Shown here: positions 1 to 23,600 of the stretch, piece by piece
How the letters are laid out: every line of letters begins with the position of its first letter
How positions within the stretch are numbered: position 1 is the first letter of the stretch
Assembly: GCA_964199315.1 (NCBI GenBank)
Contig: OZ116703.1
Span: forward strand, 26,040,001-26,104,000
DNA: 64,000 nt
Source: Orbicella franksi
Lineage: Eukaryota
Direction of reading: 5' to 3'
The notes under the pieces: model-generated
What the model saw: only the letters and a program-made list of their open reading frames with translations
Told to the model about the DNA's origin: nothing
The model's database searches: none
Program-made: the position numbers and the translations under genes

Positions 1-3000
1 GGTAGTATTCACCAACTGCCACGAGAGTAAAGCTGTAGCCGTCAAAAGTAACGTAATGACCTCCAGTCGATGATATTGCAATGGAGAGTTGCAACCAGTT
101 CAGAGACACCAGGGCAAGGGAACAGTCGGACCCAGTCCACCCTGAAGAGCACTTGCCACAGTCTAGTGTTCCATTGTAATTAGCAGTACATTCACATTCT
201 CCTGTGACGCTGTTACAGGCTCCGTTGTTGTTACATGGTGTTGCAGCTCCTCCGGGACACGGGTGTGCGCACTCTGAACCCCAGTAGCCATGGTCGCATA
301 CGCAACTCTCAGAGTCCAGCTTCTTACCAAAGACGCATTTCATGTCGCAACGCTCTCCAAACCAAATAGGAAAATCACGTCCAAGAAATTCATTACAAAG
401 TGGTTTGGCTGGCCAGACCGTTAGGTTGTTGATGGCCTGGCAGTAGTCAGCATACGCAATGATAACCTCCATGGACATGTACAAAGACCCAAAGCTTGCA
501 ATTCTTCGGAGGCAAAACCTGAAGTAAAACATAGACACACCTGGTCCCAAGGAGTGACAGTTTGAATACAGTGGTCCCATTAACAACGTTCTGTTACAGA
601 AAAGTTCAGCTTCAGTTTGTAAGGTTTTGTTCTTAAAGGGGAAATCTTGTTCTCTATCGTAGAAAGGCAGTTGCAACACTACATCGGAATACTTCCATGC
701 CGGTTTCCTCCATGGCTTAAAAGGAAGCTCGAGTTTCATACCGGTTACTTTGTCCAGAGCTTCGATTCCTTCACCTTCGTTGAACTTCCATGCGTGCGCG
801 AGATCTTGCGTTTCAACGCTCACCGATCTGTTCCAGGTCTGCAGAATGAACGCAGGATGGAAATAGCGCGTCCATATACGCACTTCATCTATGAATCCAG
901 CAAAGAAGTCAACAGGCTGAATTCCGGAGCCGTCCAGAGATGGTATCCAACTAGCTAAAGCGATGATGCCCCCTGGAGCAAAGATATCGAAACCAATGTT
1001 GATATCAAGGCGATGCAACTGGCCTCCAGACGAAAAGTAGTAGAAGTGCAATATTAAAGTGGATTTTCGGAACACAAGGCTAATCTGGTTCCATTTATTA
1101 AGCTCCGAGGCGATATTTGTATGGTACACGTTGTCTCCGTAGTAGATTGTAAACTTTCCTCCTGTGTTAGTCACAAAAAAGGTCTTACTCGTGGTATAGG
1201 ATATGATAACCCCGTACCGGACTGTTTTGAACATGAGCTTTACTGTTATGTCCGTGAAAGAGAATGCTTTGTAGATTACTCCCGAGACCACTGTAGTGTG
1301 GTCAAAGTAAAGTGCGTACCCGGCATTTGCATCGCGATATTCTACAATGTCCTTGTACTTATATTGAAACAAACTGTGGCATTCTTTGACCTTGAGCTTG
1401 GTGGTAATAAGGGTTTTTATAACATCTTGGGTCTTGGTCTTGCTATCGGACACGTTCGTTTCAAGTGACGAGTCCTCTGCTTGGTGGAAATTGTTGGGCT
1501 GGTTTCCGCTTACGTTGAACATAAAGCTTCCTTCAGAACAGTTTTTAGTTGGATGATAAGACACGAGCGATTCCAGCAATCCCTGGTTACAAGAGCCTAG
1601 TAGGCCAATTGCGGACTTGCACACCAAACCCGATGCGCTTGCACTTAGGGTCAAGTAGCGTCCTGTCACACGTATTTTCAGGTATAGCCCTGCATATTTG
1701 ACCTCCCAGAGATAAGCTGTGATCTTGTTAACCTCAAAACCGTAGCTTTGAAGAGTGATTCGATGCAAATCAATGTCGATGACTTTACCATTTAACCAGA
1801 CGATAAGGTTTCCACCAGATGTATAAGGCCCATGTAAAACAACTTTGTGCGAAGATATTTTAAGCGCGATGGAATTCACGCAAGATAGCTGTTGGAAGCA
1901 CGATACCAGACGAATTTGCACAACGACGGACAGATGGATAGAGTAAATAAGATAATACTCCCCTGTAATGTAAAGGCTGTAACTGATTCCACTGAGTGAT
2001 GTAAACTGTCCGCCAAGTGACACTGTCCCAACTCCAACCAAAACACTTCCAGATGGCCACTGCGTGACTGCTGTCGAACAATCTGTTCCAGCCCAACCAC
2101 GAGCACAAGCTGTGCAGTTTTCATTTCCTTGCCAATTAAGCTCACATGAACATTTTCCAGTTACGACATCGCAGATTCCATGATTGTTACATGCTCGTCC
2201 ACTCCCTCCTGGGCAAATTCCAGAGCAGTTTATGCCATAAAACCCTGGATCGCATATGCAGACTTCACTTTCATTTGAAGCTTGACCGAAAATGCAAGGG
2301 GTCGAGCAGTTCCTGCCTATCCAGTTCGGGAAACGCTTGCCAGGAAATTCGTTGCATAGAGATTGCGCTGGCCAGTAAGGCAAACCAAGCGTTTTCTGGC
2401 AGTAATCTGCAATTGTCACCACGGCATCGATAGATTGAACTGTTGATCCGGTGCCCACTACGGCTTCTACACAGGCGCGGAAATAAAACTCTAGTGTGAC
2501 ATTGCCCAGCCTCAAGCAAGCAGAATAAATTGGTCCCTTATAAATAAATCCGAAGCACACGTTAGTGGCGATACCTTGCAAAGTCACGTTGTTCTCATTC
2601 GGATTCAGTACAAGAACGGACGCGATGGGTGCATCAGAGAAGACCCACTTTGGCTCTTCCAAGGGATATTTTGGAAAGAATAAAGTTACACCGGAAACAA
2701 GGTCTTTAACGAGAGTATTTTCACCCTCGTTGAACTTCCACAAATTTGTAAGTGATGGAGCATTAGGCTGAATATTTGCTCGCCAACTTTGTTCAACTAA
2801 TGCATAATCAAAGGGTCTTTCCCAAACGCATATCTCATCTATTTGTCCAAAGAAGACATTTGTTGGCTGAACGCTTATGGATCCAGAAGCAGGTTGCCAC
2901 ATGCCAATAGCAAATGTTCCTCCAGTTACAAAAGGATCGACGGTAAAATTGAACTTTCGTACTTGCACAAGCCCAGATGAAAATGTCACAAACACAAAGA

Positions 3001-6000
3001 GTTCCAGCTTTGCACGAACAAATACAACGGAGATCTGATTCCACACATCTGTTTCAGTGGCAATGCCAGTGTCAAAGACATCCAGCCCGATAACAACTTT
3101 CACCGTCACGTGGTTGCTGATGAAAAAAGTCACATTGGATGTGTAAGAGATCAGAGTACCTCCACATAGACGAGGATCGCATGATTTTACTAAAAGCTGG
3201 AAGGTTAACGTTGGACTCACGAAGAGATCGACAACTTTCTCTGTGACAACAGCGGTGAAACGGTAGTAGAGACTGTACACACCACCGTACACAATTCGAG
3301 TTTCTTTGTGGATTTCTTCATCGATAACAATATCAGATCGTCCTCGGGCTTCAAGTGACAACTTTTCTAATACAAATTCATCAACGTCACCATCAGAGGT
3401 ATTTGATCCTCCTACCCCTTCTAGAACAGTCGTTAGTTCAGGTCCTTGAGTATCATTTTGCCCCGGTTGTAGTTTGGCACAAGAGCCGCACAAGCCATCG
3501 ACAATCTGACAGAAGGTAGTAGATACAGTTGACTCCACGCTTAGGTATCGATCTGTAAAGACCGCTCGTATGGACAAATACTGCGAAATGACAATCCTGT
3601 AGGCGGTATTGGATATAGGCTGAATGGTCACATTGTTTCTCAGCATATCTTTGGTGAGCTCTCCGCCAGCATTAATTGGTTCTCCGTTAACGTGCACGAC
3701 TGGCAATGAATCACTTTCGTAGGCCGCATGGACACTAATGGACAGTCCATTGAATCTCACAGCAACAGCATTAAGACACACAGAGCTCTTCTCGCAAGGT
3801 ACTTGTCGGACTTGCGCTTGAAGGATGGAGGAATTTATCATGATGAATTCGCCTAGTGTTGCAAAAGTAAATAGCGAGCCATCGAAGCCGGTGACATAAC
3901 CTCTCTCAGATATGGTACAAACTTTTGAAGTCTGATTTGCAACGCTGGGATCTGTTGTCGATATCGCGATAGAGCACGACCTGCCTATCCACCCTGGGGT
4001 GCATTTTGAGCAGTATTCATTTCCTTGCCAATTTGGATGACACTTGCATTCACCAGTTTCTACATCACATTGTCCATGTCCAAAACACGGGTTCCCAGCT
4101 CCTCCTGGGCACTCATTGGAGCAGTTCACCCCCCAGTACCCACTGTCACATTTGCACGTTCCATCAGAGTATTGTCCAACGATACACTTAGTTGTGCAGT
4201 TTGTTCCAACCCAATCATTATAGCGTCCTCCTGGAAGAATATTGCAAAGGCCTGCTCCAGGCAAAGTTGAAAGGTTCAGGGCGGCTTGGCACTCCTTTCC
4301 GAAGGCAGCTGCTGTTGTAAGAGCTGAGTCGAGCTTTCTTGAGGTAGACACTTCGGAAATGCAAGCTTCGTAGTAAAATTCGGATCCTCCAGTCACGTTT
4401 GAGCACTCATTGTATAGAGGACCTTTAAGGAAAATATCTGAACACAGCTCTTGGGTTACGTTGTCAGCTTCTTCTTCAGAGGGATCTGGTGTGATGAAAA
4501 CGTTGGTTTCTTTAATGGCATCGGAAGGATACCAAATTGGGCTTCTCCAAGGCGGGGTAGGAAGACTAAAATCTAACGATCCTACTGTCGCGCGACACAC
4601 AAAGCCACTTCCTTCATCGAACTTCCATAAGAGCGCAATCCCTGGTGTTTCTGCTACGAGATTGGTATTCCAGGTTTGCTGTATCATAACAGAATCGAAT
4701 CGTTTGTTCCAGAAGCTCAACTCGTCCACCCAGCCCACAAAGCCAGGCAGGGAGAGGGACACTTTGGTCACCTGCCAAAGAGCAATGGCTAAGGTACCAC
4801 CTTCGGCAAATATTCCTACACCAACGAAGAAGACTCTTGTTTGAATGACGCCTATTGAGTTAATGAGGTAGAACTGAACAAGACCCGAGCTCCGCCTGTA
4901 GACAAATGATATGTGGTTCCAAAGCTCTGTTTCAAGCACAAGTCCAGTGTCAATGACTGTAGTACCAAAGTGAATCATGACAGTCATATTCACAGCTATT
5001 GCAAAAGTTTCACTGAGGGCGTATGAAATAATAGTACCACCGAACACACGCGGATCCTTTGCCTTCACAAAGAACTGGATAGTGATGTAATTACCAACAA
5101 AAACATTCACCAGAGGTGCAGTGATGACAGACGTGCCATTAAAGTAGAGACAGCTTCCTCCTTCGCTAGTCGATAGTGATTCGCCAGAGATGTTTAGTAT
5201 GGGACCAAAAGAGCTCTCGTTTCGAGGGACAGACCACGAGGTCACGTAGGAGATCAAGATGTCTTGAGTTACAGTTGATATATCATGCGTATCTAAAATT
5301 CCTCCAGCTGTGCAGTTTGAGGGCAGCACGCTTGATTCAGGGTCGCGGCACCTCCCGAGGAGACCACAGACTTCTTGACACAACCATCTGTTCATTGTTA
5401 TGGAGACATCGAAGTGTACTGTGAGGGAATTGATAACAAAGTTGAAACCTCCTGGACCAGTCACCACGTACCTGTTGAGGGACGTCCGTTTAAACACAAA
5501 TCCTGAAATTCCAAGTGAAATCACGCTCTTGTAGCTGACAGGGGAGCCGTTGAGTGTAACCAAGACCTGGCCCCCGATTCCAATACTGCTGTGGATTGCC
5601 ATCACATTATCCCCTACACGCACAATTACACATCTTACACGTACGTAACTTCCGATTCGAACTTGCCGAAACTGGATGCTGAGTCCATAACGAACCAAGG
5701 CCAACACCTTGAATTCACCAGCTACATTTACGTTGATCTTGACGCCATCTAAAGTCACGTAGTAACCGGTCCCAAAGACCGACGTTATTGGGAGCTCTTC
5801 CGTAGGTGCTGTAACAGAAGCTGAACAGTCTTTACCAAGGAAACCAGGAGTGCACTGGCTGCAGTCAAGTGCTCCGCGCCACCTTCTCCTACAGCGACAT
5901 CTTCCACTACCACCTAAACAACGTCCATGCCCACTACATACGTTCACAGGTCCACCAAGGCATACTCCACCACACAGCTGTCCCCAGAAACCCCGGTCAC

Positions 6001-8601
6001 ACTTGCAACTTCCAACCAATCCCGTAGGTTGATATCCGTAGAGACAAGAAATGTCACAATTCACTCCTATCCAGTTCATGAGTCTTGAATTTCGGAACAC
6101 TTCATACTTGCACATCTGTTGCGCTGGCCACACAGTTAGGTTAGCTTGTACTTGGCACGTGTCTGCAAAAGCCACCACGACATTTAATCCAAAGGATACC
6201 TGACCAGTTGAAGCAATGACTCGTAAACAAGCTCTTACATAGAAAGCTACTGTCCCACCACCAAGCCCGCCGCAGGCGATACCAACAGGTGATTCCTGGA
6301 TGTTTTCATGGCACCACGTTTCTGCTTTGATTCTCATGTCGCTCGTTTTGAACTTTATTTCAGTGGTTACAGGAAGAATCTTAACATTCGCGTAACTGAA
6401 GATCCATTTAGGTGCCCTACGTACGGACGGAATGTACAAGTGGACTCCGCTCACCAGGTCGTGTATGACGTCACCCTGTCCTTCGTTGAACTTCCACAAA
6501 ATTGCAATATGAAGAGCGCTAGAAATCACGTTTACTCTCCAGCTTGTCTTGACATCTTGCAGGCTAAATTCACGGTTCCAGAAGCGTACCTCATCGATCA
6601 ATCCAACAAAACCTGGCAGTTTATCGTTCTCCGCTGTGTTCCCTTCAAGAGCTGGTATCCACTGCCCAATGGAGATCATGTTTCCTGTGTATAACGCACC
6701 GGCACTCATGGTTCCTGTGGCTTGACGAACAATACCAATGGAATTGATGTAATAAAAATGTATTGCCCCAGTGCTGTTGTAGTAAACAAGGGTGACTCGG
6801 TTCCAGGCCTCAACTTCTGGAGAAAAACCTGTGTCCCAGATCTCCACCCCAATGCGTACTTTTAGGGTTACCTGAATAAACACTGTCAGCGTTATTGTTT
6901 TGCTGTAGGTTAAGAGTACACCTCCAGGATTTCGTCCAGTAAACATCTTAAACAGGAGTTCTGCGGTAATGACAGAAGCATTTAAGACTTCAGGCATGAG
7001 ATCACTACAAACACCAACCCCTTTGAACTTTAAGGCGTATTCAGCACCTGTTGTAACTCTTTCTTCGTTGTAAGTTCCATAGTGGTAGAAGAAGAGGCTT
7101 TCGTCGATAGAAACTCGCCACGTTTCTTCCAGAGAACCACCACCTGTCACATTGAAGTCGTTGTCTCTGTTTCCGTCGCAGTTTCCGCACAGTGCATTTG
7201 TACCGTTACACAGCGATTGCTCAACATGGCCTGCAATGATAAGTCCTCTTCCTGAAACTCGAAGTTGAAACTTGAGATCTTCTAGTACATTGCTAAGAAC
7301 GTATGTAGTTGAAGATGTCTGCTCTAAGAAGACTTCACTGGCAATTTGAAGCGTTGTTGAACTGTACTCTGTCACACTTCCATTTATCCAAATAACCGGC
7401 CGCTCGGTCTCCTCATATGGTGCGTGAAATACTATTTTCCATCCGTACTTGAAAGAAAATGCTACTGCATTAATGCAACGAGATTCTCCATTGTGACATG
7501 GAACTTGTCTTAGCTGGCCATTGAAGTGGGCGCTTCTGACGAACCAAAATTCCCCGAGTCCAAAAAAGTTAAAGTGAGCGCTGTCGAAGTTGGTAAAGTG
7601 TCCTCCAAGGAAAGCAGAACATGTCGGCAACTGCGATACTGCCACAGCCACGGCGCAATCAGATCCTGTCCAGCCAGGTGTACAATTACTACAGTCGTTA
7701 TTTCCTCGCCAGTTCAAATCACATTCACAGGCTCCTGTCTTGACGTCACACTTGCCATGCTGGTTACAAGGATTGTTTCCGCCTGCTGGGCACTCACTGG
7801 CACAGTCTTCACCCCAGTATCCTGGACTGCATACACACAAGCTAGCATTGTTTCTGTCTACATTTCCGAAAACACACTTATAGGAACAGTCGGGACCAAT
7901 CCATCCCTGAGGAAAGCTCTTGGGAAACTGATGACACAGGAGTTGAGCTGGCCATGAAGGAAGATGGAGAATAGACTGGCAGTAGTCTGCATAGGCAGAT
8001 AATGCAATATAGGCGGTGTCCAAAGAACTAGAGGAATGAATATCGTAAACACATGCCTTGAAGTAAAACTGAGGAACGGCCGCGTTCAGTAGCTGACCAC
8101 ACTGTGTTTGTAATTGGGTGTCGTAAATAAGCTCAAAACACAGCTTATCGGCTAGAATTCCAAACGTGATGTTCGTAAACTGCACAGTTGAACTAACAAC
8201 TATCGATGGAAACACGTCCCGGACATACGAGAACTGCCACAACGGTTGACGGCTGATTACCTTAGGAAGGAACATGGCTGAGGAGCCGGATATACGATTG
8301 CTAACCACTCTGCCTAAGCCCTCGTCAAAAAGCCACAGGGCACTTAGCGTCGGTAATTCTTCTGGTATAACAACAAGGAAACTCTGGCGAACAAGAATAG
8401 TGTCCAGTGCAAAGGTCCAGATGCGAACTTCATCTATGCTTCCAAAGAATGGATGCAGTGGTACACCAGCGATATGTTCTTGTGTTATGTGCCACTGGCC
8501 AAGCCATAAAGTGCCACCGGAAGTAAACAAGTCAGGTCCTAGGTAGATCTGTTTGGTAAAAAGTTCACCTTGAGCATCTAACTGGTAGTAGTCTAGAACA
8601 C
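1..8601 (-). CDS. exon 35 (>=8601 nt, starts phase 1, open past window edge), LamG2 end through VWD7 start
   Basis: ctttcag|GTGTTC. Manual translation gives GSIDEVRIW, LWLFDEGLG, GGHFTNFDS, GTGYYVTLDG, GYVTGFDG, GGQFTSLSG and GGHYVTFDGYSF at the edge. The ORF track shows no stop-terminated ORF in this frame, consistent with no stop before position 1. Confidence 0.92.
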
Positions 8602-11600
8602 CTGAAAGAAAATAGTAAAGAACGTGTGAGCAAACAGATAAGGCATTTCTCCAGGGATAGAAGTAGCACGGTTAGCAATTGAAAGTATATAAGACACAAT
8701 AATCTTCAATGAAACCTTTTCTCGGAGAAGTACAATTACACGAACGACATATCTAGCTACATTAAAATGACAGCAAATTCATACAAAGAACCACACATAT
8801 AAGGTATTCTTACCTGTAGAGGAACTGTATGCGATAGAAACTTGAATCCAGGATCCCAGAGGCAGTGTGATTCCCATGTCGTACGAAACTCCACCGACAT
8901 AAATTTTAACGCTGACATCGTTCACGATGGCAAAAGTGAATCCTTTTGCATAAGATATGATTGTACCTCCAAGAGCATCAACTTTAACAAATAGCTGCAG
9001 AGTAAAGTCTTGGCCTTTTACGAAAGCGGTATTTAGAGGACCGGTGGAAGCAATTGTACCATTAAACTTCAGTGCGTATCCATTCACAGTAATTTCTCGT
9101 TGTTCGTTATAGCTCGTGTAGCCAAATACAAACAGTGAGTCAATTGCGGACACTGTCCATTGGGAGGTAAAGATGTCAATTATCGTACGCTGTGAGATGG
9201 TATGACCCCAATACACCGTACCTGTACTGTTTGTAAAGTCGTTTGCGATGCTTGAGTCGCATGAGGAACAAAGTCCAGAAGCAACAGTACACAAAGAACC
9301 GGCAGAAGTTATCTCGAAGGAAAGATACTTCTTCCAAGCTTTCACTCTTAGTAATATGTTGTCAGGTCTATCTTTTCTGATTTCATACGTCTGTGGAGAA
9401 ACTCTACGAAATATAAAGTCATTTTCCAGGTTTAGAGATGTTGTGTCTGTCAGTCTACGGTTGAACCAGACTAGTGGCATTCCACTGCCGTTGTAAGAAG
9501 CTCTAACTGTTATCTGTGTTGAACCCGTTTTCATTGCCAATGATGAAATGCAAAACGAACCACTCATACAGGGGATTTGTCGGACCTGAGCTGTAAACTC
9601 ATTGGTTTTCATCAAGTAAAATTCTCCATAGGTGCCAAAAGTGTAGCCAGCGCCGTCAAAGGTTGTGTAGTGCGCTGCTCCAAATCCCTGGCATGTGACG
9701 TTGTCTACATTGCTGACATTTCCTCCGAGTGCCACAGAACAGTCAGCTCCAACCCATCCTGGAGAACAGACGCTACAGTCACGAGTGGAGTTTGCTTGAA
9801 CTGGGCAGGAGCATTTTCCGGTGAAATTATTGCATGGTGATTGGGCGCTACATGGAACGTTGTAACCACCGGGACATTCTCTTGAACAGTTTACACCGTA
9901 GAATCCTTTCATACAGACACAGCTGCTGTCACGGCTGTTGTTTCCTGGAAGGCCAAATTTGCACTGTTGGGCACAGTTTACACCATACCACTCTGGGAAG
10001 TTAACAACAGATACATGGCGACACAAGCTCTGAGCATACCACGAAGAGTGCTCTGCAAACAGTTGATAGAAATCTGATAGAGCCATTAATGGCCAGTAAG
10101 CATCACTATAATGGCTACTTCTGGTAACGGATGTTACGCATGACATGTGATAAAACCATCGCGTTGCAGTATTCAGCACGGTGTACTGTGATCTCAGCGA
10201 CGAAGCAAAGATTAGGTTGTAACATGTCTGCTCTACATTCATCCAGGTGCTACCAAATCTGAAGCTGTATGCGGTCTCAATGTCAACTGAAAAGTTCGGG
10301 ATGTCAACTGTAGAGTACACCCATGTTGGCCCTTGCCAGATACCTGATCGAAATCTTATATGGGCGCTGGACACACAGTCGTGCGCTACTGTGCCATCGC
10401 CTTCGTTGAGCTTCCAAAGACTTGCAAGGTTTTGAATCGGTAGACGACAGCCCAGATTTTTTCTCCAGTTAGCCGAAATAGTAAACGGGTCCAGCTTTTG
10501 ATTCCAAATTCGCACTTCATCAATTTGTCCGATGAAACCCTCCTTCAGTGGTATTTTTAGTCCTCCTGGTGCTGGCTGGCAGTACCCTAAGGCAAGAGTT
10601 CCTCCCGGTTGAAACACATTGACGTTACTCGGAATGGGAAAGTTTCGGCTGTGTACTCGTTGTCCGCCGTCATCGTTGTAGTATAATTGGTAGAATTGGA
10701 GAATTCGAGTCGATACAGACCAGACCAGAGCAATATGGTTCCATTTGTGTGTGTGAATGACTGCCAGCGTGTCTAAAGTGGTGTCTTCATAGCGTAGTTT
10801 GATCTTACCAGAGTCAAGTACCACAGCAAACATCTTTGTGCTGGTGTACGAGAGAAGCGTACCGTTTTGACTCTCAGCACGAACCATAAATTCGATGGTG
10901 ATGTCTGAAGACGTGAAACTGTAGATTTCTCCAGTGTGCGCACCGGAGTTATTGAAATGCAATGCATAGCCTCCACCGTAAAGTTCTCTTTTTTCGTGGT
11001 AGTTGTTGATGTCATAGGCAAACAAACTGTTCTTCTCTGCTACTTGCCAAGACGTTCCATAGAGCTCGTGAATGTATGATTGCGAGACATTTGTTGCTGT
11101 AATTAGTCTATCGTCTCTGCTAGATAAATCGTCATACCAGTTGGAGTTACAGTTGCCCCAAAGTCCCTGGCTGGCCTGACAATAAGTCTGATTGTCAACG
11201 CGTAAGTGGACATCAAGATATCGGTCGTACAAGCGGATTATGAGCTGAACACCGTAAATCGAGGAGAGTACAAACTGTAACCGGGATATTCGTTTAAACG
11301 TGAACTTTTGATTTGCTGGGCCAAAGTCGAACTCAAGAGAATACGTTCTCCTCCCATTGGCAAACACGATAGGCTCTTCTTGATTAGCAAACCTTGAATG
11401 GACCAACAACGTGTTCTGTTCGATCTTTATTGCTACAGCGTTGAAACACGAACTCGATGAAAAACACGGGACCATCCGAACCTGGATCTCTAACGACTGA
11501 GACAGTATCAGGTGATATTCTCCATTTCCCAGGAACTTGTACCCAGTTCCGTCAAGTGTAATGAAGTAACCATGTCCAAATGCCGCCGCGGTCTGGTTGT

Positions 11601-14600
11601 TTGGACTTTGCACGACGACTGAACAATCCAAGCCATGCCAACCGTCCGAGCAGGTGGTGCAGTTGACGTCTCCGCGCCAGTTAGGGTCACACGAACACAA
11701 TCCCGTGGTCTTATTGCAGAGACCATTGTTAAAACATGGCGTAAGTGGCCCACCAGGACAATCATACTGACATGCTAGACCCCAGTGTCCATCGTTGCAT
11801 GAACATGTGTAGGTTTCACTAGATATCTAGAGAAAAAAAATACCGTTTAAAATGTTAGATGCGTGCGATATTTGTGTCATTTTCAGGGTAAATTTGAAGA
11901 GACGTATGGCGTAAAGGAGTAGGGTACATTAGAACGGTTTTCATTTGAGTATCGAAAGTAATTCGCGTTTACTTTAGCCTTGCATCACTACGCCAACCGA
12001 TTGGTTTGAAAAACTCGCGCCTCTTTGTTATCCAATCAGGAGTAAGACAAAAGCCAATCGTGACCCACTCCCTCACGTTTTCCCGAGCTACAAGTCAGCC
12101 AGACATATTTGCTTTGGGTTTTGATTGGTACACAGGATGGTCCGAGTAATTTGTGACTGGTCACTTTGGTTTTGATTTTACAACCCTCGCCTGAGACTAA
12201 GGTGAAAACGCTTTATCCTTATCACATGATTTATTTTGTCAATGCCAATTTATTTTCCTCACCGTAATAGTTTGATAATACGGGAATAATTGATTTCCTT
12301 TGTCAAATAACATCTGTACCCCTTCAGTTTACCAGGGGAAGTGCTATGTAGTGGCTAGTCGTGTTTTCCTTGAAAACTGGTGTAGTAGTTTTTAAGTAGA
12401 TAAGGGAGTCAAGAAATAAAAAATTTGGATTCACAACACTGACAGACTCGAACTTACATTGTTCATCTGAGCCTCACTGTCTGTACATCTCATGGAGTGG
12501 ACCATAGACGAATCTACTACCGCTGCATTTCTCTCGTTGGATACTGGAAATGCTACAATCCAGGCTATTGGATACGAGTCTTGCAATCTGTGTGAAGGAA
12601 AAGAAGGAACTCTGATACACGTAGAGCATTATTAAAATACTGTAAAAAGGAAAATCGAGGGAAAGAAAAATTCAGCTCATTATTAGCTGAAAACAAATTA
12701 TTTGCAATCGCTAATAGTAAATTGTTCTACTCAGCAGAACAGACCTTTTGACATATTTCAAGAACCATCAGCGTTAAACACTACATTGTTACAAATTGCG
12801 TCCTACATTTTTTTTTCTAACTGGGCAATACCAAAATTTTTAATGATATATTTTTATCTTGAGAAAAACAACTCAAGGTATTCTGGCAAAACAAAAGGTA
12901 TGAGGCTTAAACCATTAATTCAACATTTTTCTTGCAACCTATCAACGAGTATCTCTTTTGACGGTTGAAATCTGAGTTGTATACGGCACATGGCTGATGC
13001 AGTTCAAACAAATAATGATCAGCAGCTAGTGAAAGTGAACGTAATTTAAGTTCAATCGTACCTTACTATAAAAGCTTTGTCATGTCTACCCGGTGCAAAC
13101 TTTTGAGGTTGACCATAATCTTCAGTTGATAATGGGATCAGGCTACTGGTAGTATTGTCAGAGCCACTGAGTTTGCGAACAAATCCGCTCAATCCACCTG
13201 GAACAATATTTAGATAAGGCCTCGAGAAGAAGTTGCTCGGTCCTGTGTTCAAGTACACGTTGTGAGGATTTCTGTTCCGGTAACCAAACCAAGCAAACAC
13301 GTCGCCTTGAGCGGTGTTGTACAGGCAATTCAGAAAGGGTTCCACTGGGTGTTTACCCCAACCTCCGTCCAGTTTGTCACGATACTGAGCATGCGTAGAG
13401 ACGCAATCGACATTACACCTCTCTCCTACGTGTGCCTCATCGCAGACTGTACAGGTCGGTAAACCCCAGCCAAAGACACATTGGTCACAGCTTGTTCCAT
13501 TCCAGTAGCCCAACTGTGAGTCATTATGACACGTGCATATGTCTTTGTTTTGCCCTGTTCCATTGCCATGGACACAGTTAACGTCGCAGCCAACCGCCCA
13601 TCCAATATAGTTTGCTACGCATTTTTCGCATTCAGATCCAGTAAACTGAGGTAGGCAACGCTCGCACGAGCTCCCATCAAAGCCATGGTTACATGCACAG
13701 GTTGGAATGTCACCCATCAGCGTACAGTTCCCTCTGTCACTACACATAGGTTGACCAGGGCAGACAAGTTTGCTGCAATCATCACCATCAAATCCTTGAT
13801 TACAGAGGCACACTGCCGTGGCAGGAGAGCCTTGTTGCACGCAAGCTCCTCGTCCACTGCAGTCTGGTTCTCCAGGGCAGTTTAACGTTTCACAGGTTTG
13901 GCCCTTCCATCCTGGGTCACAGTCACAAACACCTTGTCTGCAAGTTCCTTGTCCAGAGCATTCGATGTCACAAGCCAGTCCGGTGTAACATGGATCACAT
14001 TGGCAAATAACGCTGTTTGGTGGATATTCGTTGCCGTGTACACACGGGAATTCACACGAAGGACCCATCGTGTTGTTTGTACAATTCACACAGATAGGGG
14101 GATCGACGCCTCCGTAGCAAGTTCCAAGTGCGTTGCAATCTGGCACACCAAGGCAGTCGGGGACATCACAGCCCTGTCCTTTCCATCCATTAAAGCAATC
14201 GCACTGCTGTGTAACTAGCAAACAGACACCATGATTACTGCAGTCTACCCCTTGGCCTGGACAACCCACTGTTTCACATTTAGCCCCTCTCCAACCGCTG
14301 TCACAAACGCAAACGCCCTGTTCACACTTGCCGTGACCATTGCATTCCGTGCCACAGTCAACTCCAGTATGACAGGCTCCACATTCACACGTATCTCCGC
14401 TTGAAGACTTAATTACTGTGCCATTAATGCAACGTTGGTTACAACCTTCTCCCATGTAACCCGTGTCACACGAGACACAAACTGGAGGATCGTGAGCCAG
14501 TCCATCACAGATTCCATGCCCACTACAATTTCCACCGCCTGCACACTGGGGTATATGGCAACCTACACCAGACCAGCCGGGTCTACAGTAACATAGACCT

Positions 14601-17600
14601 AAAGCAGTAATACAGGAGCCATGGCCAGAGCAGTCAGATCCCCAGCCAGGACAACCTTTCGTGGCACACGTGGAACCTCGCCAGCCTTCAAATCCACAGT
14701 CGCATGTATTATTTGTACAATTGCCATGTCCAGAGCACTCCTGGTCGCACGATACACCACTGTAGCAATCATGACACTGACAGACAAATAAACCATCGCT
14801 TGTTTCTTGGGGAGTACCATGTTCACATTCAGTCTCACAGGCTCGACCCATCCACCCTTTATCACAAGAACAGAAAGATGTGAATCCAAACGTCTCACAA
14901 GTACCATGGCCTCCGCACATTGGGGTACCGGGGCAAGCAGGCTCCTCACATCCCCGTCCAGCCCATCCTGGATTGCAGTCACACGTCTGAGTGGCGCTGT
15001 TACAAGTACCGCGTCCAGAACAATCGAGGTTGAACAAACCGGGGCACCCTTTCTTTTCACAAAATTGTCCACGCCAACCTTCAAAACCACAGTAGCATGT
15101 CTCATTAACGCATGTGGCATTAGGTCTCGAAGAACAGAACTCATCGCACTCTATTCCACTGAAGCAAGGCTCACAGTCACAAATGGTTGGATCATCTTTG
15201 TTTTGAGTGCCGTTTACGCAAGGCGTTTCACAGGCTATTCCTGCCCAGCCTGGCTCGCAGTCACCACAGTAAGGAGTCTCAGCTGGTATACATTGACCTC
15301 GATTGTTGCAATCAGGTTCACCAGGACAGTCAGTTTGCTCACAGCCAATCCCTGTGCAACGGAAAAGTTCCAATCAGATGTTATTACCTCAAATTTTGCC
15401 TTACTTTTCTATTGAGCATATAAATGAAACTTATTACATGATATAGAAGTAACCAATCACAGTAGAGTCCTTCAGGAGAAAAATGCATGTTACGTTGTAT
15501 TTTAGTGGGATTCTAAATAATTGCATTATGACAATACCCAAGAGCGTACAATCGAAAAGGCTAAAAAGGTGACTCTGAATACGACACATTTGATCAAAGT
15601 TGGTTCCTTAAACTAAAAGAAGCAAATCGCAAATAACTTCAACGCTATGTTAATAAAAAAATACGCCCTATAAATCTAAACACAATCAAGAGCGTATAAA
15701 AACAGCCTTTTTTAAATTTTTAATTTTTAATTTTCGTGTAACGCAAACAGACAATGTAATTATTCGATGGTTTAAAGGGCTGTTGCGTTCCTTACGCTGA
15801 AGCACTACAGCGCAGTATCAACACTGGGCACAATGCACGAAAACTGCAACAACATTATTACCAAGAACCAGATGGAAAATCACACGACATAATTTTTCCA
15901 TATGTGTCAGTTCCCAGTAATTGTAGGGCTCGTTAGGATGTAGTCGCTCGGACGGAGTGCTATTGAAAATTAAAAACGGTTTCCTTATTGTTTAGTGCTT
16001 GGTGGGATTGACCAGTTCTTTCTTCACCTAATAATCTCTCCCATGTAGGCAACAAGTTGTGGTCAGGTATAATGGCAAAATATCAAACATAAATAAACAG
16101 GCTTACCACTCCACCCAGCATCGCAGATACACGTTTGTAAAGACGTCAGACATTGTCCATGCCCTGAGCAGTCTTTCTTGTAACCAGGACATCCTTTCTT
16201 TTCACAATATTGTCCTCGCCAGCCTATAAACCCACAGTCGCATTGTCCATCTACACACTGAGAACTATGGTTGGAGCACAGCATGTCACAGGCGGCTCCA
16301 TTGTAGCACTTGTCACAGACGCAAATATGATCACTAGTTGGAGTCCCAAATTTGCAGGGTTTTTCACAAGCTACGCCCATCCATCCTTTTGAGCAATTGC
16401 ACTTTGGTGTTTCATCGTCTGTTGTGGGTGCAATACACGTGCCATGCGCATTGCAGTCAGGGGTACCAGGGCAGTCCGGAATATCGCATGCCCGACCTGA
16501 CCAGGCAGGATCGCATTGGCACTGCTTGAGCGCTCCGTTACAGCTTCCATGATTGCTACAGTCAAATGGGAATCCGGGACAACTTTTGATCTCACACACG
16601 TCACCTTTGAATCCCATGTCTTTATCGCATATACACTTGTCATTTACACAGCTACCATGTAACGAGCATTCAAGATCACAACCAGATCCAGAGAAACACG
16701 GGTCGCAAATACAGCCTGAAGAGTTTCCGTAGTTTGTTCCATTTATGCAAGGCAGTTCGCACATCTCACCAGCCCACTGCGGCTCACAATTGCACCTTCT
16801 TGGATTTGAGTTGCTACAACTTCCATGGCCAGAACAGAGCGGTTTTCCTGGACAGTCTGGGGTGCTACAATCGTCTCCGGCCCATCCTTGCGCGCATATA
16901 CATTTCTTAGAATTTGTGTCACAAAAACCATGATCAGGGCTCGTACATTGCCCTGGACATCCCGGCAGCTCACAGTATTCCCCCATAGCAGCAGCTCCTG
17001 GCTCTTGGCCACAATTACATTTGTTGTTGATGCATTCGCCAAACCCGGAACACTCACTTTGGCATCCACTTCCAGTGAAGCAGGGATCACAGACGCATAT
17101 ACCATCTTTAGGGTGACCGTGCACGCAGGGATCGTTGCAAGCTGGACCCATCCAGCCTTGAATACAGTCTGTGCACTCTGGTGTCACGCGATTAGTTGTG
17201 TTACAGTGACCACGACCAAAACAGTTTGGAATACCGGGACAATCCGGGATGTGACACCCAACACCAGTCCAACCTAAAAAGTAGACATTAAACGATATAA
17301 AGTAGTAAGATTTGCATTCCTCACAGGCTGATTAAAATATATCCATAAAGTAACCACAAGATTCGTGCCAGTGTCAGGCATGATCAACAAAAACGGTACA
17401 TTTGCAAATTAACTGTAACTTATAAGAGGACACTAGGTGCAGTTGTATTCAGTCAAGAATAGTAACCGAAGAACAAATTAACCTCCTACTGTCATGGCTT
17501 AATCATATGAATATAAAATACTGTCGTGGTTTAATTATATGAATATAATCAACTGAAAACTCTCCAAGCTTTGTAAGAAGATAATGAAATCTTCCCCGCC

Positions 17601-20600
17601 AAATCAGATGCAGACATAGAACCAATTGGAAGTTGACTGTCTGTCAAATATTGAACTGCTTTACATCGAGGACTGTTTCTATGCCTGCAAGAAAGGCTCC
17701 CATGGTTTCGGTTAATGCTTTATCCTGCCAAACAAGACCTTCCGCAATAACACAACCAAATGTTCTCCTTTGCCTACCTGGTAGACAGATGCATTGATGG
17801 TTTGCACTGTCACATTTTCCATTTCCACTGCAGTCTCTTCCATTAGAACCTGGACATCCAGGCACTTCACATAGGGAGCCTCGCCAACCAGTGAGTTGAT
17901 CACACTGACACTTATTTCCGACACAAATTCCGTGTCCTGTGCACTCCACATTGCATCCGCGACCTGTGAAGCAGTGATCACAGACACAATTTCCACTGTC
18001 CATTGGCACCTGTGTTCCGTTTGTGCAAGGATCTTCACAAGCAGGACCCATCCAGCCAGCTATACAGTTGGTACACGTCGGAGGATTAGAGCTTTCGTTG
18101 CAGAAACCTTGAAAAAATAAACAGACAAAATGAACGAGAATGCAAAAGGATGAAGTCACTATTGTTAGACCTGCTGTGTGAATCCACACCCTATCTGTGT
18201 GTGTCTCTCTGTCGGTCTGCCTTCCTGTCTGTCTTTCAGAAGAAAAAAAGATTCTGACTGTAAAAGGCTATGCTATCTCGCAAGGCTCACTTTTACATGA
18301 GACTACTAACAACAAAATAACAATAATTGTCTCCGACATAATTGAAACGTTCAAAGTTTCCCTATGGTAACGGCCTTTTTGTATCTAATGGTTACAATCT
18401 AACCCTCTTATTGAATTAAAGTAATTTCACCCAATTGACTGCAAAGTACAAAGCAAGCAGCTGTTTCTCAAATACAATACTGGACAAAAAACTCTATGAA
18501 ACTAAATTTCAACTATTTGAATACTTTTACCTCTGTTTGCACAGTCTGGATTTCCAGGACAGTCTGCGATGTGACATCCATCACCTGTCCAGCCATTCTG
18601 GCAGATACATGTATGAAGGGCACTGTTACATTCGCCATGACCCGAACAATCCTCACCATCTCCTGGACATCCGGGATTTTCGCAGAACGTTCCGCGCCAT
18701 CCAACATCACACTGGCACTTGTCATTCACAATCGTTCCATGTTCTGAGCATTCACTGTCGCACCCTACACCCACCCAGCCTGGCTCACAAACGCAGTTAC
18801 CGCTGTCCATTGGAGTCTGTTGACCGTGTACACAAGGATCATTGCATGCTGGTCCCATCCAGCCCTTAGAGCAGTTTTGACACTTAGGGGGATCTACAGA
18901 AGCGTTGCATAGTCCTCGTTCAAAGCAGTTAGGGGATCCTGGACAGTTGGGGATTTCACACCCCTGGCCAGCCCAGCCTTCGTTACATGTGCAAATGTGG
19001 GTGACTGAATTGCAGATTCCGTGGCCTGTGCAGTCGGATCCAATACCAGGACAGCCTGGGTTATCACAGAGGTCTCCTCGCCATCCCACATCACAAATAC
19101 AGCTGTTGTTGACTATTTTACCGTGCTCGGAACATTCACTATCACAACCAACACCTTAAAGAAACCAAAATAGCAATTATTTATTTTGGTAGGTCAGTCC
19201 ATAGAAAATCTATATATCAACCAAATCACACCTATAATCCGCGAAACATCACACCTCAAGTAAAAAGTATCGTAATTACGGTAGTTTTAAAGTTACATAG
19301 TGATAGTACCTGATAGCTTTTCTCTTACCTGAGTATCCTGGCCAACAGACGCACTGTCCACTGTCCATCGGAACTTGTTCTCCATACTTGCATGGGTCAG
19401 CACATGCAGGTCCCATCCAGCCAGGAGTGCAGTTTTGACATTGAGGAGGACTCATAGTAGCATTACAGTACCCGCGGTCATTGCAGTTGGGTGCGCCAGG
19501 GCAGTCTGGAATGTGACAACCGATACCTGCCCACCCGGGGTAGCACGTGCACTCGTGACTGGCGCTATTGCAGTCACCATTACCAGTACAATCTTCACCG
19601 AGGCCAGGACATCCAGGCACTTCGCAAACGTCACCTCGCCAGCCTTTGAGAGGATCACAGTCGCAAATGCCGCTTTCCGAACACGTACCACGACCCATGC
19701 AAAGAGAGTCACAGCCTTTCCCAGCCCAGCAAGGTTCGCATTTGCAAAATCCACTGTCCATTGGTTCTTGAACACCATGAACACAAGGATCATCGCAGGC
19801 TGGGCCCATCCACCCGATGGAGCAGTTAATGCACGTCACGATGGTGCCGTTTATGGTTGCACATGTCCCCCGATTATAACAATCCGGCTCGCCTGGACAG
19901 TCAGGTTGGCTGCAGTCGTCGCCACGCCACCCCGGGTTACAGAAACACGTGAGAAGGGCACTGTTGCATATGCCATTTCCAGAGCAGTCGTTTGGACACT
20001 TGGGAACTTCGCAGTAATCGCCCTTCCATTTACTGTCGCAGATACAGGTATCATTATTGCACGAGCCGTGTCCTGAGCATAAAGAATGGCAATGCGTTCC
20101 AATGAAGCAGGGATTGCATTTGCACTTGCCGCCAATGCAACTACCATTATCCGAACATTCGTACCTACAGTCCTCGCCGGTATAACATGGATCACACACA
20201 CACTTTCCAGTCACGCTGCATCGTCCATTTCCATGACAGTCACGTGTTGCGTTACAGTGATGTTCGCATCGATAACCAACATAGCCGGGATCACAGTCGC
20301 AGCCGCCAAACGCAGCGCACCGTCCGTGTCCAAGACACGTGATTGAGGGATCGCAGTGGTACCCACAGTTCACGCCATAATATCCTGCATCGCACGTGCA
20401 ATTTCTTTGTTGAGCTGAAAATGTTCCGTGTCCACTGCAGTGGTGACCGTCTGAACAAATTTGTCCATTGTATCCGTTGCCAGCACTCCCGTTACCCTTG
20501 GCGCCGCCGGATACATCCCTGTTTCGAATAACGTCCCGCCTTATGTGATCGGGTGAGAAGTGACGAAGGTGTCCCCCTCCACCCCCACCACCATCGTAAT

Positions 20601-23600
20601 ACTTCCAAGTACGGCAAGGATTGCCACTGCAACATTCAGAATGAGAGCTCCCTATACCTCCTTTGACAGTAAGGTGGCCGTGTCCTTCAAAGTGTCTCCC
20701 AGCAACCCAAAGAGTTCCACCGCTCGCCCCGCCTCTCCCAGTGTCTCCATCACTTCCATCTGCCTTGATTGAACCATCGAGCTCCAAGAGGTTCTCAACA
20801 CTTACGTACGCGATTCCTCCACCGGAAGCTGAGCTCCACCCTCCGCCACTTCCGGCCTGTTCAGCGGTACATACATTTTCGTAAGGGCTACCACCTGCAA
20901 AATAAAGAGGGTCTCACAATACATGCAGATGAAACAAGAAAATAGAACACAACATCTCTAATGGCACTGCTTATTCTTCGGCGTAAACACACCACTTAGT
21001 CTACACGTTCGTTGTCATGACGTGAAGGAGCTAACAGTAATAAGATATATTTGACCAGAACAATGTTCCTGTGAAATAGATATACTTCCTATATTATTTC
21101 CAGCCCCTGGCTACAAAAACCACCTTGAAATGACTAACTTCGGGGCTATGAAGAACGTTAATCAGCATAGTTATTTTCAATGTATTAATGTTGCTTTTAG
21201 TAATACATGATCAGTTGCTAGAACATTGTAACCTAACAGTCGAATTACAAAGATAAAAGCAATAACTAAATCCTTAAAAAATGCGAATTATTCGTTTGAA
21301 GGACTTAGACCCGACGAAATGTCTGCCCTCTGCTAACCCTCTGCGTTTAGACGATGCCCCAGTCACGTTAGGCCACCAAAACGAACAAATGTTCGTACCT
21401 GCAGTTGAACTACTTGGACAATGCCCACATCCAGTCCAATATCCGGAACCTCCTGCGCCACCATGACCAGCCCCAAATACTCCTGAGCAGGTTCCAAGGC
21501 TTCCAGGCCCCTGCTGGGAAGGCCAACCAGAATACGACGCGTCGGTGGTTGCGTCAAACTCAATGCTGAAATAATCCGTCAGTACGTTGACAGTATCGGC
21601 TTTGAGTGATCCAGTGTAGTCTAGTGCAGTTTCACGAACATGGAGATGCACCGATTGGGTAGCGATGTTCCGGGACGAACTCTGCACTTCAAAGATCGCC
21701 CCAAGGGAGATTTTAAGCTTCCTGAACCAGTAATGGCCGATGGTAGGTGTTGTGTAAGTGGTGTTACATTCCAGGCAAGCTGACTGGCCTTTTTCTGTTA
21801 CAAGGGTGGCAACATTGGAAGACAATCTTAGTTCCTCTATGCCGTGGATTTCACCGTTGACTGTCAGAGCTGACGTCCTGGTACCTCGTAGGGTGGTACG
21901 AACGGGAAGTACAATCTGACCTCCTGTATTCGCTTGGTAGTTGACGGGCGCTTCGGTGCGAATGCTGTGCGTCTCAGCGTATATCCGGGTATTTTGTAAC
22001 GCAAGTAACAAGCCCGTTTTGTCACCTGTGGCTTTTCTGGCGTACAGTTCTGAAACCATTCCAGAAACCTTAAAGAAAGTAAACAACGATCCTTAACAAC
22101 GAACCTAGGATTTCCCCGAGGATTACAGGGCACTAATAAACTGCACAGAAACGTCCTCCTTCATTTTTCAGTCATTTTAGTAATCATAAAAAAAGTGTCC
22201 TAAAGAAAATGACTTGACCTAAAAGTTTGGTGGAAAAAGAATCCAGCCAGAAGTATCATGTGAGATACATCTCTTGAGAGTTCTAAAGAATACACCAAGA
22301 TAAACTCTTGTTCTTAGGCCATCGTAGCTTGAATAAGAATATAATACAAACCACGGTGATAAACGTTGTATTCCGACGCATTTGAATTGAGAACTTGACG
22401 TTTCGTACGCTATAGTCAACAAGAATTTTCAAAAGTGACCATTACAAGTTTTGAAAACTATGTATCGTAAATGTTAGAGGTGTGGAACCTAGACTGAGAA
22501 AAAAATGATCTGCAGCAGTACGTTAATCTGTCTAGACATCATGAGGAGAAACAGCAAGTAAAGCAACAACTTCTCACTACTGACATTGACATATAGGGAA
22601 GGTTTTAGCACTTGAATGAACAGAGTCTCCCTAATTTTGCAATGAAAGTCCGTTTACCGGACTTTAAAATGTCAAAATGATCCCATTTTACGTTGTAACC
22701 AGTGCGGTTTTCACATGAGCAGCAATGGCTGAAGAATGGTCCCTATATGATAAATTTTGGACCTTTTAGCTCACCTCTTTGATCGCGAGTGCTCCTCGCC
22801 TGACTAGGTGAATTCTCTCAAACCGATAAAATGCAGTGTTCGTTTCGGCCAGTGTCACTAGCAACAGATCGTCCCTGTTGTTGTTATCAATCTGTATCAC
22901 GCGATAAGGCTCTTCTCCTACATTTACATCAATGTAAACTGTTCCTGGACTTCCATGTCTGTTGGTGCCACTGCTGCCACCTAAGGCAGTCAAGGCACCT
23001 CCGAAGATGAAGCTCTCTGTGAGGTTCACCGCAATACGCCCCCCTGAACCAGCTCCTTCATAACTGGGACCTGAAATAGTCACATGTGAGTTTAAAATTT
23101 CGTTTGCAAATGCTTAAAGTACAAACAATTTTTTTTTTTTCAGGTTTAGTTACAATTGTATATATTTGCAAATACAAAAGTGAGGATCATTTCTTCGCTT
23201 GACATTAACATGTTCATAACAAATGTAAGACAAGGCTGAGAGTTCAGTTACGCTTTTGGTTCAAACATTGAATTATTGCCTACTAAAGTTATTTCAATTG
23301 GTTTAAAGCACGTTTGGCACAAAATGTGACCCCAAAGTAATCTACGATAACAATGATTTAAGCGAGAGAATCTAGAACCAGCAAAATTTTAAAGTCTAAC
23401 TGGATACCATTTCTAACTGGTGGCAACTCTAAAGAATTTCTAACTGTAATTATAAATTATATTATATTTTAAATTGCCGTGTTTTTCTTCTCGCGAAATT
23501 CAAATAAATTGCCGATGTTGGTGTGAGGAATGGAGGCGGAACGAATTCTTCGATCACTTACTTGGTGGACGTTTACAAATATGCTAAAATCATCCTAATA

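Follow-up and report, generated by a model that had tools for sequence, protein, structure and literature searches.

In von Willebrand factor (VWF), the gel-forming mucins, zonadhesin, tectorin and FCGBP, a VWD domain is followed directly by C8 and then by TIL, and a locus in the genome of the coral Orbicella franksi raises the question of whether this D assembly can also be built with a complete LamG domain between VWD and C8. The DNA analyzed is a stretch of 64,000 nucleotides (nt) of the forward strand (NCBI GenBank assembly GCA_964199315.1, contig OZ116703.1, positions 26,040,001 to 26,104,000), hereafter called the window, in which positions are counted from the first letter. An earlier note, made from the letters alone, had described serial VWD-LamG modules at its start and read them as a D-assembly variant with a LamG/pentraxin-like insert. 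The analysis indicated that the modules, encoded at window positions 1-11826 and beyond the window start, come from the C-terminal two thirds of a single gene that is expressed in the coral and most probably encodes a giant type-I membrane protein belonging to the VWDE family, whose nine serial modules each carry a LamG domain between a VWD and a small helical cysteine domain, and that in a predicted model of one module the VWD and the helical domain are packed as VWD and C8 are.

Organization of the module array

With module 3 as the phmmer query against the spliced C-terminal protein, nine serial full-length copies of the module were located, all encoded on the minus strand. Six of them, each 610-645 amino acids (aa) in length, are complete in the window, namely M1 (protein residues 72-699, window positions 9730..11613), M2 (704-1323, 7646..9717), M3 (1324-1933, with its four parts located below), M4 (1936-2550, 3965..5809), M5 (2558-3182, 2069..3943) and M6 (3191-3834, 113..2044), while M7 starts at residue 3839, corresponding to window position 100, and has its first part at 1..100. 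The remainder of the array lies outside the window on the minus strand of L001, where M7 occupies 5527-7398, M8 3631-5511 and M9 1813-3609, followed by a transmembrane helix and a tail. The serial array of the earlier note, with six modules and a seventh starting at the edge, was thus recovered, but its account has to be changed, in that module 2 is split by an intron and the array comprises nine modules, M7-M9 reaching beyond the window. All nine copies align end to end, as do 53 modules of 14 homologous proteins (alignment A1), and the pairwise identity among modules is 27-43% per domain, far beyond chance.

Each module contains, in this order, a VWD of ~195 aa, a variable linker, a Laminin_G_3 domain of ~230 aa, a short linker, a helical domain of 85 aa and an EGF-like part of ~90 aa; M9 has no EGF part and leads straight into the membrane helix. 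In module 3, the VWD (module residues 1-195) is located at 7061..7645, the LamG/pentraxin-like insert (196-428) at 6362..7060, the helical five-cysteine domain (432-518), which is assigned through its homologs to the Pfam family PF26129 named 'Vwde', at 6092..6352, and the teneurin-type EGF-like units, at the place of TIL and E, at 5816..6091. The Pfam families matched were VWD (6.3e-20 and 1.4e-30), Laminin_G_3, EGF_Teneurin, EGF_2 and EGF_TEN, with no TIL in the modules, and the region with 13 conserved cysteines has an EGF-type pattern, in agreement with the earlier proposal that EGF modules take the place of TIL. The helical cysteine motif that had been reported for every module was seen in each copy, with its conserved cysteines corrected from eight to five.

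Cysteines that are missing together allow some disulfides to be deduced. Both C50 and C57 are missing from ten modules, which with one exception are of the M4 type; C146 and C156 are jointly absent in two modules, and C458 and C497 in M1, whose helical domain lacks its second and fourth cysteines; since the members of these pairs are lost together, three disulfides (C50-C57, C146-C156 and C458-C497) are inferred. The three helical cysteines left over and the 13 of the EGF-like part imply one more disulfide, which would join the helical domain to the first EGF-like unit. The VWD of module 4 was found without C50/C57 in every orthologous copy across corals, a module-specific trait that has long been kept.

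Predicted packing of the VWD and the helical domain

An AlphaFold2 (AF2) model of module 3, built with alignment A1, forms one confident body (mean predicted local distance difference test score, pLDDT, 93.5; predicted template modelling score, pTM, 0.89) with helices only at residues 435-518. Foldseek and VIA-align placed its VWD part on the VWDs of VWF and mucins, and the closest solved structures to the whole module are the D assemblies of VWF, MUC2, MUC5AC and MUC5B. When the top Foldseek matches were aligned with VIA-align, complete D assemblies ranked first, with 270-308 residues aligned over model residues 1-~600, including 286 residues at 3.4 Å on MUC5AC D2, and the alignments extended into the EGF-like part, to model residues 582-609. 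A shape search of the ESM Atlas returned a zonadhesin VWD-C8-TIL model (255 residues at 2.8 Å over residues 4-517) and BMPER (262 residues at 3.1 Å). These superpositions of 255-308 residues far exceed the size of a lone VWD (~190 residues), suggesting for the VWD and the helical domain the relative position that VWD and C8 occupy in a D assembly. In the predicted structure, the two domains thus hold their canonical mutual packing, and the earlier reading of the module as a D-assembly variant is supported by the model. A sequence search of the module against the PDB gave only a chance EGF match to reelin.

The coral module and the D assemblies of VWF, MUC2, MUC5AC, MUC5B, FCGBP, zonadhesin and BMPER therefore have in common a VWD fold, a packed helical cysteine domain and a later small disulfide-rich unit. 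They differ in that the coral module has a pentraxin-like LamG domain of 230 aa between VWD and C8 and a teneurin-type EGF part instead of TIL and E. The insertion is constant, as LamG (~230 aa) and two linkers separate the VWD from the helical domain in each of the nine modules and likewise in the 60 homologous modules that were aligned, whereas C8 directly follows VWD in the canonical arrangement.

Gene structure and expression

The two stop-free frames of the minus strand, at window positions 8782-11826 (1015 aa) and 2-8671 (2890 aa), are linked by a phase-1 intron of 212 nt (8602..8813) with GT and AG ends and a polypyrimidine tract, located in the LamG domain of module 2. Exactly these 212 nt are skipped in the RNA contigs of runs X1 and X14 (metatranscriptome and single-cell RNA) and in the raw poly-A reads of X23. 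The exon at 8814..11826, with its acceptor at 11826 and its donor at 8814/8813 according to the RNA joints, carries EGF-like units before M1, the whole of M1 and M2 up to the middle of LamG, while the remainder of M2, M3-M6 and the start of M7 lie in the window portion (1..8601) of a giant exon. This exon runs on past the window start as an open frame, 4824 aa in the genome, that ends at window coordinate -5801, 5.8 kb beyond, and the assembled spliced C-terminal protein has 5805 aa.

Further joints in the X1 contigs (11826->12458 and 12587->13062), over both of which the reading frame is open, define an exon of 130 nt at 12458..12587 and lead to an upstream exon at 13062..15373, which encodes teneurin-type EGF repeats (Pfam EGF_Teneurin, 4.3e-47) and a non-EGF stretch of ~126 aa. 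From these joints and the open frame, the module array, the 130-nt exon, a non-EGF domain of ~170 aa and the teneurin-type EGF array (13062-20913) belong to one transcript. The ~170-aa domain, made of the ~126 aa and 43 aa from the next exon (12458-12587 and 13062-13450, minus strand) and located between the EGF array and M1, had no Pfam match. The gene is clearly expressed. A prokaryotic origin was rejected in view of the GT-AG introns, the spliced RNA and the coral homologs.

Membrane anchor, GDPH motif and cytoplasmic tail

The protein ends with a hydrophobic helix (residues 5690-5712), the basic run RRRKRRR and a tail of 93 aa. The tail terminates in ESAV (L001 ~1498-1510, minus strand), with ESAL, ESAM, ESHV, ETNV, ESSI or ETAM in the orthologs, and this ending of S/T-x-hydrophobic looks like a class I PDZ ligand. 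Both the helix and the conserved tail with its PDZ-like end persist in relatives ranging from corals to anemone grade, and the homologs from Ptychodera and Ridgeia have a transmembrane helix as well.

GDPH is a self-cleavage motif in the VWDs of MUC2, MUC5AC, FCGBP, MUC4, SUSD2 and RGM. In the coral protein, FGDPHFT was detected only in the ninth, membrane-proximal VWD (residue 5112; L001:3570-3585, minus strand, outside the window), with no variation among the cnidarian orthologs examined, and by analogy the cnidarian protein would probably be self-cleaved near the membrane into two associated chains. Its absence from the homologs of Ptychodera, Ridgeia and Nucella indicates that self-cleavage is no family-wide feature. 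The position of the motif, at the first strand of a membrane-proximal VWD, is the same as in MUC4, SUSD2 and the RGM family; the VWDs of SUSD2 and MUC4 are among the best structural matches to the coral VWD part, and one homolog of the coral gene has a precomputed RGM_C match. The coral protein differs from these proteins in having the motif in one of nine VWDs and only in cnidarians, in having neither NIDO nor AMOP domains, and in that its cleavage is putative.

The membrane end bears on whether the protein acts as a receptor or is mainly a secreted or shed matrix protein that forms polymers, multimerizing via its D assemblies in the manner of VWF and the gel-forming mucins. D assemblies drive multimer assembly in VWF, MUC2, MUC5AC and MUC5B, the very proteins whose solved structures are closest to the module, and in VWF D3 the cysteine of the intermolecular disulfide sits in the C8 cysteine cluster. 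By comparison, the coral C8-like domain would have no cluster corresponding to that disulfide, and the protein possesses no CTCK or CK dimerization domain, VWC or mucin region. Cleavage at GDPH, beside the membrane, could free the ectodomain, and vertebrate VWDE is regarded as a secreted extracellular matrix glycoprotein (PMC7390686), yet the conserved transmembrane helix and tail argue for anchoring. Secretion is also compatible with a receptor, as shedding can come after surface display, and a protein that is mainly a secreted polymer is considered unlikely, though it is the likeliest of the alternatives.

Relationship of the helical domain to C8

An alignment by hhalign of 60 helical domains with ten canonical C8 domains of the same genome gave a probability of 80.6% (E 1.3e-5), with the second cysteine, FY..C, A..A.YC and W(P/R)....C kept in register. 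The central C-x-C....C-x-C cluster of C8 faces cysteine-free sequence in the helical domain, which has five conserved cysteines, compared with at least eight in a full C8 set. When scanned in isolation, 12 of the 60 helical domains matched Pfam C8 (best E 7.4e-6), and no other family came near. The cysteine domain thus does align with C8, as the earlier note had supposed, and its sequence allows it to be identified, with moderate confidence, as a divergent, cysteine-depleted C8.

If the helical domain were instead unrelated to C8, the module would consist of VWD, LamG, a novel small helical bundle and EGF. Such a reading could draw on the Pfam C8 model finding no copy at E<0.1 when whole modules are scanned, on a genome-wide scan that detected 10 canonical C8 domains elsewhere and none in the array gene, on the five cysteines against the usual 8-10, on the separate family PF26129 kept by the Pfam curators, on an hhalign probability of just 80.6%, and on the inflated structural scores to which small helical bundles are prone. 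What makes it quite improbable is that four landmarks stand in register, that C8 is by far the commonest family match of the isolated copies, and that the weakest matches of the helical-domain profile include canonical VWD-C8 proteins (P0265, with the pattern V-H-V-H, where V stands for VWD and H for the helical position). Moreover, rigid superpositions over 255-308 residues require the VWD and the helical domain to be jointly in the D-assembly arrangement. The descent of the helical domain from the same source as C8 is accordingly the reading retained below, at the moderate strength given above.

The LamG/pentraxin-like insert

A profile of the LamG segment, searched against the PDB, matched neuronal pentraxin-1 (NP1, 2.6e-10), the Limulus SAP-like pentraxin (4.2e-9), NP2 (4.8e-9) and PTX3 (3e-5), and the LamG region separately matched the LG domain of PAPP-A. 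The jelly-roll relation of LamG and pentraxins was thus seen in both sequence and fold, and the coral domain has the strand '..G.IDE.R.W' in common with the pentraxins (NP1, NP2, PTX3, SAP and CRP) and the PAPP-A LG domain. In contrast to the pentraxins, it is embedded in a D assembly and is not a free oligomerizing domain.

The loop GQEQD provides calcium ligands in SAP and CRP. In the HMMER alignment it corresponds to GQWQP in the insert, with W in 44 and P in 30 of 50 copies; no conserved D/N was found in the LamG copies at the loop of the first calcium ligand (DNE), and the pentraxin signature H-x-C-x-[ST]-W-x-[ST] is aligned with W-N-Q-I-S-L-V, which has no cysteine and no second tryptophan. 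As both the ligands and the signature are replaced, the calcium-dependent binding that had been suggested earlier is not indicated in a pentraxin-type form.

The LamG segment is the best conserved part of the module, with 72% and 54% identity to two other hexacorallian orthologs, compared with 66% and 47% for the VWD and 65% and 52% for the helical domain, and the lowest values in the linkers, suggesting that the insert is under constraint and is no passive spacer. Among the AFDB clusters, several 'VWD domain-containing' entries that look bacterial by name were aligned with model residues 4-~350, and a VWD followed by a LamG-like domain may also exist outside animals.

Distribution and age of the array

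An exhaustive HMMER search with the helical-domain profile detected 158 clusters among 1.84 billion representatives. Segment hidden Markov models found the order VWD, LamG, helical domain and EGF (V-L-H-E) in nearly all of them, and a few canonical V-H proteins at the weak end. The named sources include Montipora, Porites, Desmophyllum, Actinostola, the hemichordate Ptychodera flava, the gastropod Nucella, the bivalve Dreissena and the annelids Ridgeia and Owenia, and all homologs from named sources are labelled uncharacterized or hypothetical. The best named relative is OS493_002941 from Desmophyllum pertusum, with 82% identity, and others are found in Montipora, Porites and the anemone Actinostola. 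XP_070533132.1 of Ptychodera flava (6778 aa) has the same layout as the coral protein, consisting of an EGF array, nine V-L-H-E modules of which the last has no EGF, and a transmembrane helix. The two differ in the last VWD, where FGNIHFT replaces the coral FGDPHFT, and in the tail, which in Ptychodera is longer, unrelated to that of the coral and without an S/T-x-V end.

A maximum-likelihood tree of 35 modules, obtained by a quick LG+G4 search and showing long branches, paired coral M1, M3, M4, M7 and M9 with the Ptychodera modules of the same rank (support in the Shimodaira-Hasegawa-like approximate likelihood-ratio test, SH-aLRT, 99, 90, 88, 94 and 100, respectively). Coral M8 was grouped with Ptychodera module 8, though with weak support, and Ptychodera modules 1, 2, 5 and 6 were paired with the Nucella modules of the same rank. 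This pairing by rank speaks clearly against a recent amplification, and, as judged from the tree, supports an origin of the nine-module array before the split of cnidarians and bilaterians. A lineage-specific origin of the array by recent tandem amplification, with copies that are interchangeable and functionally redundant as in a mucin-like spacer, is extremely improbable, since the single architecture common to all modules and their location in one giant intron-poor exon, as in many recently expanded repeat proteins, are outweighed by a per-domain identity of 27-43% between modules against 65-72% to the orthologous copies of another coral, by the pairing with hemichordate and gastropod modules, and by module traits that orthologs keep, such as the loss of C50/C57 in M4 and the presence of GDPH and lack of EGF in M9.

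Relationship to the VWDE family

PF26129 is a precomputed match on all close homologs, comprising P0001, which is 93% identical to the window protein, and 35 more, and database annotation gives this family the name 'Vwde'. It is the only match on a 186-aa fragment made of the helical domain and EGF, and it lies between Laminin_G_3 and EGF_Teneurin in an 851-aa fragment, from which it follows that PF26129 is the helical domain. Together with PF26129, the homologs of the coral gene carry VWD, Laminin_G_3 and teneurin-type EGF, and the combination of VWD with teneurin-type EGF repeats, a trait of the VWDE family, was found by Pfam in the coral protein. In a Foldseek search of Swiss-Prot with the module model, human VWDE (Q8N2E2, residues 420-919) was matched over model residues 6-561 with ~420 aligned pairs and the highest template modelling (TM) score by query, 0.37, and mouse VWDE (Q6DFV8, residues 428-920) over model residues 6-610 with 0.36; stretches of this length would require a LamG-sized segment. 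A mollusc cluster named 'VWDE-like' aligns over model residues 3-607, and the top AFDB cluster is an amphioxus protein (E 3.8e-29, model residues 4-519). On the basis of PF26129 in its close homologs and the matches to the human and mouse models, the coral protein is most probably a multi-module, membrane-anchored VWDE-like member of this family.

Vertebrate VWDE is regarded as secreted and, as judged from its single named VWD and the single matched stretch 420-919, would have one such module followed by a long EGF array, whereas in the coral protein the EGF array precedes the nine modules, and a transmembrane helix with a cytoplasmic tail comes last. VWDE is needed for limb and fin regeneration in vertebrates (PMC7390686), and the papers on it name only VWD and EGF domains (PMC7390686, PMC9117669). 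No paper was found that describes the LamG insert, and none in the library searched pairs VWDE with laminin G. The architecture is annotated piecemeal in the databases, as Pfam Vwde and 'VWDE-like', and no account treating it as a D assembly with a LamG insert came to light. As to whether the earlier note had come upon a common and already described architecture, it is rare and no paper on it was found, but the helical domain is already a Pfam family and relatives are already called 'VWDE-like'.

Two other candidates were rejected. The proteins of PMC4890752 are neurexin-like, without VWD, and the Acropora mucin-like protein B3EWY9 matches through its VWD only. Other searches yielded little: a homolog search with the module alignment had only 7 coral fragments among the matches listed, nothing scored in a search with LamG and the helical domain, and ESM Atlas feature searches returned only generic Laminin_G_3 or EGF clusters with scores <0.9.

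Other features of the window

Many RNA reads map to 34 nt (11930-11963) of the intron that precedes the module exon. On either side of this segment the flanks of the reads are unrelated (loose ends in X23 and X1), and at 11951 the reads carry an A>G difference; the segment is probably a short repeat or a piece of another transcript. Farther upstream, the minus strand contains more very long stop-free frames (26171-30961, 38166-45815, 45968-47548 and 60223-61491) of up to 2550 aa, in which essentially no Pfam matches were found apart from one sub-threshold DUF7382. A run of 143 N, either an assembly gap or masked sequence, occupies 50964-51106.

Working model and meaning

The explanation that accounts best for the whole, and that we hold to be highly probable, is a giant type-I membrane protein that belongs to the VWDE family and carries an EGF array and nine LamG-bearing D-assembly beads in an ancient and fixed array. 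The ectodomain would begin with the EGF array and continue as nine rigid beads, each of them a D assembly with LamG between VWD and a cysteine-depleted C8 (Pfam 'Vwde') and with 13-cysteine EGF-like units in place of TIL and E. Because the packing of VWD and C8 is kept in the model, LamG is expected to hang off the D-assembly core as an extra face, and the same-rank counterparts of the beads in a hemichordate point to a fixed and ancient string of nine different beads. The protein may serve as a long adhesion or matrix-organizing receptor, offering nine distinct LamG and D-assembly surfaces to presumed extracellular partners. The cnidarian form would probably cut itself close to the membrane, leaving two chains that stay associated, and the tail might tether the protein to PDZ scaffolds inside the cell.

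Several observations weigh against parts of this explanation, in addition to the Pfam C8 scans of whole modules and of the genome mentioned above. The packing of VWD and C8 comes from a predicted model and alignment summaries, the homology to C8 is only moderate (81% probability), GDPH is confined to the cnidarian proteins, and coral M2, M5 and M6 had no resolved placement in the quick, long-branched tree. The link to vertebrate VWDE rests on a Pfam family name and Foldseek TM scores of 0.36-0.37, and no vertebrate sequence was recovered in the sequence searches with the module alignment, the helical profile or LamG with the helical domain. No published experiment was found on the coral protein or its invertebrate homologs.

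A bolder proposal, held tentatively and judged slightly more apt to fail than to hold, is that the VWDE-family unit represents an undescribed class of D assembly with a pentraxin insert devoid of calcium sites, that its ancestor was a nine-bead membrane receptor fixed bead by bead before cnidarians and bilaterians separated, that vertebrate VWDE is a reduced, secreted derivative, and that each bead has its own partner.

What is new here is the module order conserved between coral and hemichordate, the GDPH motif found only in the last VWD and the C-terminus resembling a PDZ ligand; among the points added to the earlier reading, the conservation of the nine-bead array and the GDPH motif next to the membrane are of greatest interest. 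VWF and the gel-forming mucins fold, multimerize and bind partners through D assemblies, and a variant that tolerates a 230-aa domain between VWD and C8 and has lost most C8 cysteines would indicate which parts are dispensable and offers a contrast of structure and function. If the core of VWDE is viewed as a D assembly with a LamG insert, defined surfaces would become available for mutation. That a nine-module receptor has been retained, module by module, between corals and hemichordates hints at an ancient system of extracellular interactions among marine animals.

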